Positions 32,501 to 35,500 of a DNA stretch of 64,000 nucleotides are shown here, one piece after another. The translations under genes and the position numbers were made by a program. This DNA is from Perna viridis. Taxonomy: Eukaryota. Location of the stretch: assembly GCA_037379345.1 (NCBI GenBank), contig CM074515.1:23498001-23562000 (forward strand), in the 5' to 3' direction. A model generated the notes under the pieces. That model had not been told where the DNA came from. It was given only the letters and a program-made list of their open reading frames with translations, and searched no databases. Numbering within the stretch: the first letter of the stretch is position 1; every line of letters begins with the position of its first letter.

Positions 32501-35500
32501 GAAGTTATGGAGTCTCTCCTCAAGACTTTCAAAACCTTCAATCTGAAATAATATTTGAAAAATCATAATACATTTTAAATTATTTTTATTACTGGGGATC
32601 AGTCTTCCATTTATATTCCTTAATGAGGAGCAGTTAGGAACTGTTATCATTCATGAAAAGTTGTCATTTAAGAACAAGTCACTAAACCTGTCATAAATGA
32701 CCATACATCAGTCACCAATGAATCATAGATCAGTAACCAATGGATCATAGATCAGTCACCAAGGATCATATATCATTCACAAAAGGAAAATGAATATATG
32801 GATCTTAGATCAATTACTTGTGGACATATAGATCAGTCACTACTTCATAGATCTGTAAAAACAAATTGCAGAACAGTTTGGAACTGCATACTGCATACCT
32901 GTTAAGCATAAAAACAGTTCATGTGTGCAGTGCTCCTCCACTGACACCTCTGTTAACAAAAAGAAAAGTTCATGTGTGGGATTCTCTCCCATTGACACAC
33001 CTGTTAACCACAAGAACAGTTCCTATGGGAGATTCTCCCCCATTGACACCTCTGTTAACCATAAGAATAGTTTATGTGTGGGATTCTCCCCCATTGACAC
33101 ACCTGTTAACCACAAGAACAGTTCATCTGTTGGATTCTCCCTCCATTGACACACCTGTTAACCATAATAAGAATTCATGTGTGGAATTCTTCCCCATTGA
33201 CACACTTGTTAACCACAAGAACAGTTCATGTGGAGATTCTCTCCCATTGAAACACCTGTTAACCACAAGAACAGTTCATGTGGAGATTCTCTCCCACTGA
33301 AACACCTGTTTACCACAAGAACAGTTCATGTGGAGATTCTCCCCAATTGACACACCTGTTAACCACAAGTACAGTTCATGTGGAGATTCTCTCCCATTGA
33401 AACACCTGTTAACCACAAGAAAAGTTCATGTGGGAGACTCTCCCCCATTGACACACCTGTTAACCACAAGAACAGTTCATGTGTGGGATGGATTCTCCCC
33501 CACTGACACATCTGTTAACCACAAGAAAAGTTCATGTGGGTGATTCTCCCCCATTGACACATCTGTTAACCACAAGAACAGTTCATGCATGGGAGATTCT
33601 CCCCCATTGACAGCTCTTTTAACCACAAGAACAGTTTATGTGTGTTATTAATATAGTAATTTTCACCAAAAATGTGGTATTCTCCCCCATGATGTGGGAG
33701 GGTTAACAGGTATGATACTATCTCAGTGACAGTCCTTCCTACTATTCTGACGATATGTACAAGAAAAGACAAGACATTCAAGAGTCTACTTACTGGTTCA
33801 TAAATCTTTGGCATTTCAAAGTCTGTATCATCAGGTTCATCTCCGGTTGGTTCGGGAGCATCCCTAAATATTGATATATAATGTTTTAAAATCGAACATA
33901 TCAGAAGTCTTTGAAACATTTAAAATCAAGAAATTTACAAGATGCTTTCAAAATAAGTCTTGAAGTGCAGCAATTTGCTACAAAAGGTACTAATATTTGA
34001 AATTAAACAATTATCAGTAAATTTAACAGAAATTTATGTAATCCACATTAATTTCTCCTTTTGATTTATATTTTTTACAGATATCGACACAAAATAGAAT
34101 TGAAATGTAAAGGTTTTGTTTATTACTGAAATATTTAGTGAGTTAGAATCATATGTTGTGATTGAGAAGACATGTGAATGTTAAGCAGAAAACATATTGA
34201 TAATTATTGTTTAGTTAAATATGAATAACACAGAATTATATTGATATTAAAACATGTAGATAAAAATTATAATTTGACAAAAAATACACAAAATAAATCA
34301 ATTATGGTGTTTATTAAAAAAAAAACTTTCTACTTTCTATGCACCACAAAATCAAACTAAAATTAAAAAAAATTGTATGTCTTATAATCTATTACTAAAC
34401 AAAAAGCAAACATCTATTAACTTAGGGGTGAAAAATAAACCATATCAAATTAGGGGTGAAAAATAAACCATATATTTTACTCTACAATAAAACAAAAGAC
34501 AAATTAGCAGAGCACCATTAAAAGCAGTTTTCTGATAGTATTATTTCCATATTTTACATTTTTAATACTAGCAAATTCTGTTAGAATAGAGAAAGTTGGA
34601 TTTTAGTGTATCTTTGTATTTAATCATATTTTGATTAAAAAAGCATTCTTTTTTTCTCATTTAAACAAACTGCAAATTAATCCAAGTAAAAACCCCACAA
34701 AACACACAGTAGTTTACACCTCATGATCATTCAATATCCCTTCTCTGTACCTCATGACTTTAAAATATTTTCCTTATTGTACCTCATAAAGTCTCCAAAA
34801 TAGAGTGTCGGTTTGCAATATTCGTAATGGTCACTTTCCTCTCCGAATTCCTCACTGGCGACTCTAGAAATGGTCTTTTCAAACCAGTTCATGTCCTCTT
34901 TTGAGGTAAACCTGTTTCATGGTTCAAAGGTCAATAAATAAATAACTAAAGGACAAAAATCACATGTTACAAAAAAAATATCAAGGCTCAAACCATAATG
35001 ACTATTGGTTTTTATTTTTGAATAAAGAATTTAACCATGATTTAAAAGGATTGTTTTTTGTACTAATGAAAAAATATCACTTTAACCAGTTCCGAAATCA
35101 AAATTTGAGCCTTGACTTCTGGGTGCATGGTTTTTAACCAGGTTTTAAATGGTTTTCAATAAAAAAAAAATAATGCTTTATAGCAAAATAACTTTAGCAA
35201 TCCAAATCAAAGTTTAAAACCTGACTAAAAAGTAAAAAAAGGTAAGCAAAGGTAAGCAACCAAAATGTAGGGTGAAGGAGAAATCAAGGGCATTGTCATG
35301 ACAATGACCAACAAACCTCATAAAGTCAACATAAAAATGTGTGGGCTCGGTCCAATGAGCATGTTCCTCAGATAATTCCTCATTTATAACTCTAGCAATA
35401 GTTTTTGTAAACCAGTTGTAATCCTCAGTTATGGTGAACCTAGCAGAAGACATGCATGGTTAAATATACATATTATACACAACAACTACACTACGAAAGC

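Follow-up and report, generated by a model that had tools for sequence, protein, structure and literature searches.

The stretch of DNA analyzed in this study, hereafter the window, comprises 64,000 nucleotides (nt) from Perna viridis (GenBank assembly GCA_037379345.1, contig CM074515.1, positions 23,498,001 to 23,562,000) and is free of any N. A dynein heavy-chain gene of the DNAH5 class occupies its minus strand from about 62.6 kb down to 12.3 kb, and the present analysis concerns two adjacent exons of this gene, 35a and 35b, which lie between the constitutive exons 34 and 36 (Table 1) and which are likely to be used as alternatives of each other. Each of the two consists of 1 base, 40 (35a) or 42 (35b) full codons and 2 bases, is free of stop codons and has phase 2-2, compatible with the end of exon 34 (...ADR, phase 2, GAC AG/gtaaag at 39248) and with the start of exon 36. 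The edges read ctgctAG and GTttgt for 35a, and aaacAG and GTacaa for 35b. An initial annotation of this DNA had described two intact paralogous exons between exons 34 and 36, and this description was borne out with respect to the AG/GT boundaries, the absence of stops, the common phase and the peptides as written. Its boundaries for 35a, 35b, the end of exon 34 and the start of exon 36 could also be retained, whereas the end of exon 36 had to be corrected to 33794. The products of 35a and 35b are 55% identical and their nucleotides 66% identical, with a synonymous divergence (dS) of about 1.2 and a nonsynonymous divergence (dN) of about 0.36, and no alignable similarity was found between the introns that flank them. 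An all-versus-all comparison of the open stretches of the minus strand returned 35a and 35b as the sole duplicated coding exon pair in the window (E-value 1.6e-12), and when all six frames of the 723 Mb assembly were searched, these two copies and no third were found. Being homologous neighbors of like length and the same phase, 35a and 35b are, judged from their sequences, a tandem exon duplication.

To which class of dynein the gene belongs was read from a 258-residue exon, which gave bit scores of 480 with human DNAH5, 438 with chain I3 of the 9fqr entry (9fqr_I3, a 4730-residue chain of a sperm axoneme), 304 with the Chlamydomonas gamma chain, 225 with DNAH10 and 210 with DNAH9; the inner-arm chains scored far lower than DNAH5. 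Since the highest scores fell on chains of the DNAH5/8 class, the gene encodes a DNAH5/8-class outer-arm heavy chain, the N-terminal part of which falls beyond the window. The assignment to an outer-arm dynein made in the initial annotation can thus be narrowed by best similarity to the DNAH5/DNAH8 (Chlamydomonas gamma) class, as opposed to the beta class (DNAH9/11/17), the inner-arm and the cytoplasmic dyneins. The molecule name given in the file for 9fqr chain I3, CFAP57, is at odds with a chain of 4730 residues that can be aligned over its full length with a DNAH5-class dynein; the name is probably a labelling slip for DNAH8, as the chain adjoins DNAH17 and has the size of DNAH8.

The place of the exon pair in the motor follows from its neighbors. 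Exon 34 corresponds to positions 16-67 of the 100 positions of Pfam AAA_lid_1 (E-value 3e-15), the preceding exon encodes the end of Pfam AAA_7, and AAA_8 begins in the exon that follows exon 36. The modules around the exon therefore follow one another in the order AAA_7, AAA_lid_1 plus DYN_lid, and AAA_8, an order that is also found in the gene calls of contig L008. Because of this order of the Pfam neighbors, exon 35 must encode the last third of the AAA3 lid together with the start of the connector to AAA4. The initial annotation had put the segment between the AAA3 small subdomain and AAA4; a better description is the C-terminal third of that lid with the beginning of the connector. When single sequences were compared with the solved structures, 35b matched residues 2834-2875 of human DNAH5 and 35a matched no dynein; to place 35a, a profile of eleven exons of its type (a-type, see below) was needed. 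The profiles of the two types each matched one and the same place per chain, namely residues 2834-2875 of human DNAH5, 2940-2979 of 9fqr_I3 and 2685-2723 of the Chlamydomonas gamma chain. In line with what had been noted initially, the segment thus occurs once in dynein heavy chains, with one match per solved chain and one copy in each of the paralogous genes of this mussel.

To follow the pair beyond the window, 35a was searched against 1.84 billion representative proteins, and the DNA of ten matching frames was then examined. The search returned 30 short open frames, each of them a genomic exon that continues into intron sequence and contains, in the same phase, an a-type core of 40 residues. 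A second protein search with 35a, whose length filter and word index leave full-length dyneins and distant short frames out of reach, returned the orthologous genomic open frame P0001 alone. Including the window, a-type exons with intact AG/GT boundaries and phase were found in 11 contigs. Every contig with enough flanking sequence had exon 34, the a-type exon, the b-type exon and exon 36 in this order, and the ordered pair was present in eight animal contigs besides the window, which come from different samples (L003, L008, L009, L010, L012, L013/L014, L015 and L016); the contigs L007 and L011 stop short of where a b-type exon could lie. All exons examined (20/20) are bounded by AG and GT and measure 123, 126 or 129 nt, and the intron between the a-type and the b-type exon (a-b intron) spans 405 nt in the window and 258-2009 nt in the other species. 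The two types have the first half of the peptide in common (F..xD..W..K...RV..E) and differ in the second half. One alignment position divides the types without exception, the a-type having T, N or V and the b-type E or D, and the terminal YFVDF of the a-type exons, or a close variant of it, has G, C, M or Q instead of V in most b-type exons (YF[G/C/M/Q]DF). In a maximum-likelihood tree all a-type exons were separated from all b-type exons across a single branch with support values of 78/79; the split was recovered in 76% of the bootstrap trees and none of 500 label shuffles performed as well. With its 40 columns, the tree thus lends moderate support to one old duplication, and the pair as a whole is, by its distribution and divergence, old and of tandem origin. 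Contigs L013 (1117-1197) and L014 (532-612), from one other species, contain an incomplete third copy that comprises the last 27 codons of the exon and directly abuts the b-type exon.

The constraint on each copy was estimated against L003, the closest relative used for the comparison of dN with dS. The orthologues of 35a are 90% identical in protein, with a dN of 0.048, and those of 35b 74% identical, with a dN of 0.235; the corresponding dN values for the constitutive neighbors are 0.094 (exon 34) and 0.036 (exon 36). All four exons are saturated at synonymous sites, with a proportion of synonymous differences at or near 0.75. The low dN in spite of saturated dS implies that both copies are under purifying selection, and the possibility that either is a decaying copy was rejected on these grounds. 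By these estimates 35a appears at least as constrained as its constitutive neighbors, and 35b looser yet far from neutral. That both exons are kept by selection, as the initial annotation had supposed, is thereby supported for each copy separately, and also by the ordered pair in the eight further contigs.

Evidence for the use of the exons came from sequencing runs. The region was present in 20 runs, and the contigs of four of these (X1, X2, X17 and X9) were placed on positions 33700-39450; X1 and X17 gave nearly identical numbers and are probably one data set, which leaves three independent sets. The joints considered are the 15 best supported of 73, with a summed depth of roughly more than 140. 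Among them, the joints 39248>34911 (exon 34 to 35b) and 34783>33863 (35b to exon 36), both with GT..AG ends, were found in all four runs, at contig depths of about 78-83, 19-28 and 10. Since these joints are spliced, the runs contain RNA, and since exon 34 is joined to 35b and 35b to exon 36, 35a is skipped in the transcripts concerned. For 35a itself the evidence lies in the break points of the contigs. In all four runs, a contig that ends at 35441 is followed by one that begins at 35412, and this overlap of 30 nt fits the node that a 31-mer graph should show if exon 34, itself ending in AG, is joined at 35439. Analogous breaks at the acceptor (34886) and the donor (34811) of 35b accompany the 35b joints given above. 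Moreover, a contig of X2 ends at 35345, the node expected for the donor of 35a, and the depth of the 35a bin in this run exceeds that of its flanks two- to threefold; in X9, contigs cover the 35a bin and leave the next intron bin (35044-35235) empty. Contig breaks at predicted splice nodes in combination with exon-island cover in two runs point to the use of 35a.

Taken together, these data make it likely that 35a and 35b are ancient and conserved alternative exons in an outer-arm dynein gene of the DNAH5 class, with one of the two in each transcript, and that two motor isoforms result; very probably, the gene makes two versions of the third ATP-binding module of the motor. Several observations weigh against this. 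No joint from exon 34 to 35a, from 35a to exon 36 or from 35a to 35b is among the best-supported 15 of 73. In X1/X17 one contig runs colinear and unbroken from 35a into the downstream intron, so that part of the 35a cover in these runs is probably unspliced RNA. Rough bin arithmetic for 35a versus 35b (15 versus 78 in X1, 70 versus 28 in X2, 14 versus 10 in X9) relies on contig depth, a poor measure of isoform ratio, and the difference in the a:b ratio between samples is a lead only. In addition, the RNA nature of the runs as such is a guess and their tissues are given as codes, and the split between the types in the tree, built on 40 columns, is only moderately supported. Of the mutual exclusivity put forward in the initial annotation, the skipping of 35a where 35b is used was thus observed, and strict exclusivity is inferred; of the junctions it had named as diagnostic, 39248>34911 and 34783>33863 were seen, and 39248>35439, 35317>33863 and 35317>34911 were not among the best-supported 15 of 73. 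We infer that 35a is spliced in instead of 35b, and that the ratio of the two differs between samples.

A division of labor between motile cilia and sperm flagella would be one way to use two such isoforms. Vertebrates have the paralogues DNAH5 in motile cilia and DNAH8 in sperm flagella, and the initial annotation had suggested that a single gene might serve both purposes in this animal by exon swapping. We consider a split of 35a and 35b along these lines unlikely. It would accord with the dominance of 35b in X1/X17 and the at least equal cover of 35a in X2 and X9, as far as the rough arithmetic goes, and with the profile scores, in that the a-type profile is slightly better on 9fqr_I3 than on DNAH5 (27.6 versus 26.9 bits) and the b-type profile better on DNAH5 than on 9fqr_I3 (24.6 versus 20.1 bits). 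However, these differences amount to no more than a few bits, the a-type profile outscores the b-type profile on both vertebrate chains, and the tissues of the runs are coded; an equation of the a-type with DNAH8 and of the b-type with DNAH5 was therefore rejected as unsupported beyond a few bits. The premise that one gene covers both settings is further weakened by two more DNAH5/8-class loci in the assembly, each with a single AAA3-lid segment. The locus at 47.805-47.814 Mb of C6 is 82-84% identical to the 258-residue exon, and that at 18.12-18.135 Mb of C5 contains pieces that are 60-93% identical to it. The fused exon of the C5 locus, at 18.12 Mb, is nearer to the sperm-axoneme chain than to DNAH5 (50.7 bits on 9fqr_I3 versus 42.1 on DNAH5), and this separate gene may already supply the sperm form. 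The parallel with DNAH5 and DNAH8 is a lead, not a finding.

As to the structure of these two loci, the single segment at C6 47805000-47814700 (L019 6057-5908 and 5695-5519) is split by an intron at a different place, and the equivalent of exon 34 is split there as well. At C5 18121500-18135400 (L020 3037-2876 and 2674-2480), which lies 5.4 Mb from the window, the single segment is fused to exon 36; two of the matches at this locus contain a stop, which may only mark intron edges.

Less probable still is the view that 35a and 35b are two independent cassette exons, so that a sizeable share of the transcripts would carry both, which would lengthen the lid in frame by 41-43 residues, or neither. 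Several properties of the locus would permit this. With lengths of 123 and 129 nt the reading frame is kept by 35a alone, by 35b alone, by both and by neither; an a-b intron of 258-2009 nt allows splicing from the a-type to the b-type exon, with no steric, U12 or nonsense-mediated decay constraint to prevent it; and a 35a>35b joint could be among those beyond the best-supported 15 of 73. On the other hand, the segment is single in every solved outer-arm dynein that was matched, and since the residues of the same lid helix are preserved in each of the two copies, these are more readily seen as substitutes than as additions. The RNA data tend in the same direction: the joints of highest depth, those from exon 34 to 35b, show 35a skipped, and neither a 35a>35b joint nor a 34>36 joint is among the best-supported 15 of 73. 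That 35a is an unused or rarely used relic and that the gene in practice makes the 35b form alone would explain why only 35b joints are among the best-supported 15 of 73, why only 35b matches a solved dynein as a single sequence and why the 35a bin in X1/X17 is no deeper than the flanking intron, but it is very improbable in view of the 90% identity of the 35a product to its orthologue in L003 with a dN below that of exon 34 at saturated synonymous sites, the intact splice sites and phase of a-type exons in 11 contigs, and the contig break points that fit the use of both splice sites of 35a.

Under the preferred reading of one exon per transcript, the question is how the choice would be made, and the three general rules that can impose exclusivity do not apply. 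Steric exclusion is precluded by the a-b intron, which at 405 nt in the window and 258-2009 nt elsewhere exceeds the limit of about 50-60 nt between donor and branch point; an incompatibility of U12 and U2 sites is not found, as all donors are GT with a U2-like context and all acceptors are AG; and a frame shift followed by nonsense-mediated decay is not expected from exons of 123, 126 or 129 nt. The initial annotation had likewise stated that the spacer is too long for steric exclusion and that double inclusion would keep the frame, both of which were confirmed. It had also called both donors weak. They do depart from the consensus and are conserved in this departure, the donor of 35a being GTTTGT in both bivalves and that of 35b GTACAA or GTATAA.

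Several blocks of the introns are conserved between the window and L003, and outside of these blocks the introns of the two cannot be aligned. The first follows the 35a donor directly (Table 1) and contains a small palindromic hairpin with arms at 35288-35298 and 35299-35309, the pairs of which are kept in both. Two stems lie in the a-b intron. For stem 1, the consensus fold with L003 has 16 pairs, with two compensatory double changes, two compatible one-sided changes and none broken, and the sequence of its loop is not conserved. For stem 2, both arms have a 10-nt core whose sequence does not differ between the window and L003 and which occupies the same position in the intron, with the second arm ending about 70 nt upstream of the 35b acceptor; the pairing has a probability of about 1.0 in L003, compared with only 0.14 in the isolated intron of the window. 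The RNAalifold consensus of the window and L003 was computed from sub-region alignments, as an alignment of the whole a-b intron put the stem arms out of register. The folding z-scores of the introns, -1.8 and -2.2, are weak when taken alone. Inverted repeats of 12-28 nt with arms 122-244 nt apart were present in the a-b intron of four more species and absent from that of two. Long-range inverted repeats across the 5.7 kb region were considered as well and rejected as AT-rich and unconvincing.

An element inside the loop of stem 2, TCATGGTTAAAT, is complementary to 11 nt upstream of the 35a acceptor (35455-35465) and to 8 nt upstream of the 35b acceptor (34917-34924), and it is thus a candidate for competing pairing. 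The pairing score was reached by 0 of 60 shuffled introns in the window, by 6 of 60 for the homologous, lower-scoring element of L003 and by 0 of 60 in L009, and in the other six species the pattern was no better than in shuffles. These complementarities fall short of establishing a general pairing switch.

In 3 of the 11 contigs, the motif TGCATG, to which Rbfox proteins bind, lies upstream of the a-type acceptor at a distance of at most 35 nt (35451-35456 in the window, at about 20 nt in L003 and at about 32 nt in L012), and it was never found within 100 nt of any b-type exon. The 25 nt before the b-type acceptors (34914-34938 in the window; L009, L010, L012 and L016) are rich in C and A and poor in T, and end in ACACAG, CCACAG or AAACAG; the tracts before the a-type acceptors are T-rich and often end in TGCTAG.

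Table 1. Exons of the AAA3-lid region and intron elements of the dynein heavy-chain gene (window coordinates)
Feature	Position	Strand	Description
Exon 34	39248..39411	-	164 nt, constitutive, middle of the AAA3 lid
Exon 35a	35317..35439	-	123 nt, 40 full codons, a-type; signature NWFTKT ... THFYVDFM
Block after 35a donor, GTTTGTTGGTC...	35288..35316	-	about 30 nt, near-identical in L003; small hairpin
Stem 1 hairpin, a-b intron	35131..35231	-	arms 35213-35231 and 35131-35149; 63-nt loop in both species
Stem 2 long-range stem, a-b intron	34981..35115	-	arms 35104-35115 and 34981-34992; perfect 12-nt inverted repeat
TCATGGTTAAAT element, a-b intron, inside stem 2 loop	35029..35040	-	candidate competing-pairing element
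Exon 35b	34783..34911	-	129 nt, 42 full codons, b-type; signature starts WFEKT
Exon 36	33794..33863	-	70 nt, constitutive, acidic connector ...PKIYEP toward AAA4

From these features, a choice that is assisted by RNA structure and regulated by factors would be the most likely mechanism. The pair arose by tandem duplication, and each member contributes the closing third of the AAA3 lid along with the beginning of the connector that leads to AAA4. The pre-mRNA would then carry one of the two exons into the mature transcript, selected by the joint action of weak but conserved splice sites, structured elements in the a-b intron and trans-acting factors, rather than by intron length, type of splice site or reading frame. 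The resulting isoforms would differ where AAA3 packs against AAA4, a proposal that draws on the known role of AAA3 as a regulatory nucleotide site of dynein motors. Outer-arm dynein sets the ciliary beat frequency. A possible, though decidedly tentative, extension is that a switch between two versions of the AAA3 lid of the gamma-type outer-arm heavy chain, kept across a broad range of marine invertebrates and set by conserved RNA structures in the intron, tunes the gating by AAA3 and thereby the beat properties of particular tissues or stages. If this is true, the two lid versions would give the cilia or flagella of different tissues or stages a different beat from one gene. A natural pair of variants of about 41 residues, both under selection in many animals, marks a part of the interface between the AAA3 lid and AAA4 as a tuning knob of evolution, and 35a and 35b offer a ready-made comparison for motor biophysics. 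Similarly, conserved stems in a short intron provide a tractable model of exon choice without steric, U12 or nonsense-mediated decay rules.

Two repeats were encountered in the neighboring introns. Intron 36 contains a minisatellite at 32897-33644, with a 51-nt unit in about 14.6 copies with 84% matches and one frame free of stops, which lies outside of the stretch used for the placement of RNA contigs. Intron 34 contains an element at 38312-38535 with 33-nt terminal inverted repeats that are 94% complementary. Its contig depth was in the tens of thousands in all four runs, and it is probably an abundant transcribed repeat resembling a miniature inverted-repeat transposable element; related pieces lie at 30760-30861 and 12847-12987.

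Known systems offer three points of comparison. The vertebrate pair DNAH5 and DNAH8 belongs to the same heavy-chain class and likewise provides two versions of one motor. In vertebrates, however, the whole gene varies, whereas here the variation is confined to about 41 residues of the AAA3 lid, and the mussel has paralogous genes in addition; on present scores, the a-type and the b-type cannot be equated with DNAH8 and DNAH5. A second comparison concerns the control of exon choice, for which exons of the 14-3-3 zeta type, controlled by competing RNA pairing, are one precedent. In exon 6 of insect Dscam, as outlined in PMC5740500 with reference to Graveley (2005), competing RNA pairing controls which of the exclusive exons is used. 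The window would resemble this outline of Dscam in having an a-b intron element with complementarity to sequences upstream of both acceptors, and conserved stems in the same intron. Set against the same outline, the paired stretches are short, at 8-11 nt; they are weaker in the closest relative and do not recur in other species.

The closest precedent is Schistosoma mansoni's heavy chain of cytoplasmic dynein, for which a mutually exclusive exon in the motor domain has been described (Pillmann et al. 2011, PMC3228551), a case that Kollmar (2016, PMC5100056) mentions again, with the general remark that alternative splicing affects the motor domain of some dynein genes. In Schistosoma as here, a tandem duplicated exon of similar length, whose copies are strongly homologous and begin and end within a codon, is located in the middle of a heavy-chain gene, and exclusivity was judged from the fact that the segment occurs once in the alignment of the family. 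The two cases differ in the class of the motor, which is cytoplasmic dynein-1 in Schistosoma and outer-arm DNAH5 in the mussel, and, as far as the text of that study says, in the exon concerned. In the literature, we found nothing on an alternative exon in a heavy chain of the DNAH5 class. Alternative exon pairs in dynein motors are thus already known, and the DNAH5-class pair is a well-conserved addition to the few described for dynein motor domains. It goes beyond the Schistosoma case in that the pair was followed across nine genomes, with estimates of selection for each copy and with partial RNA evidence.

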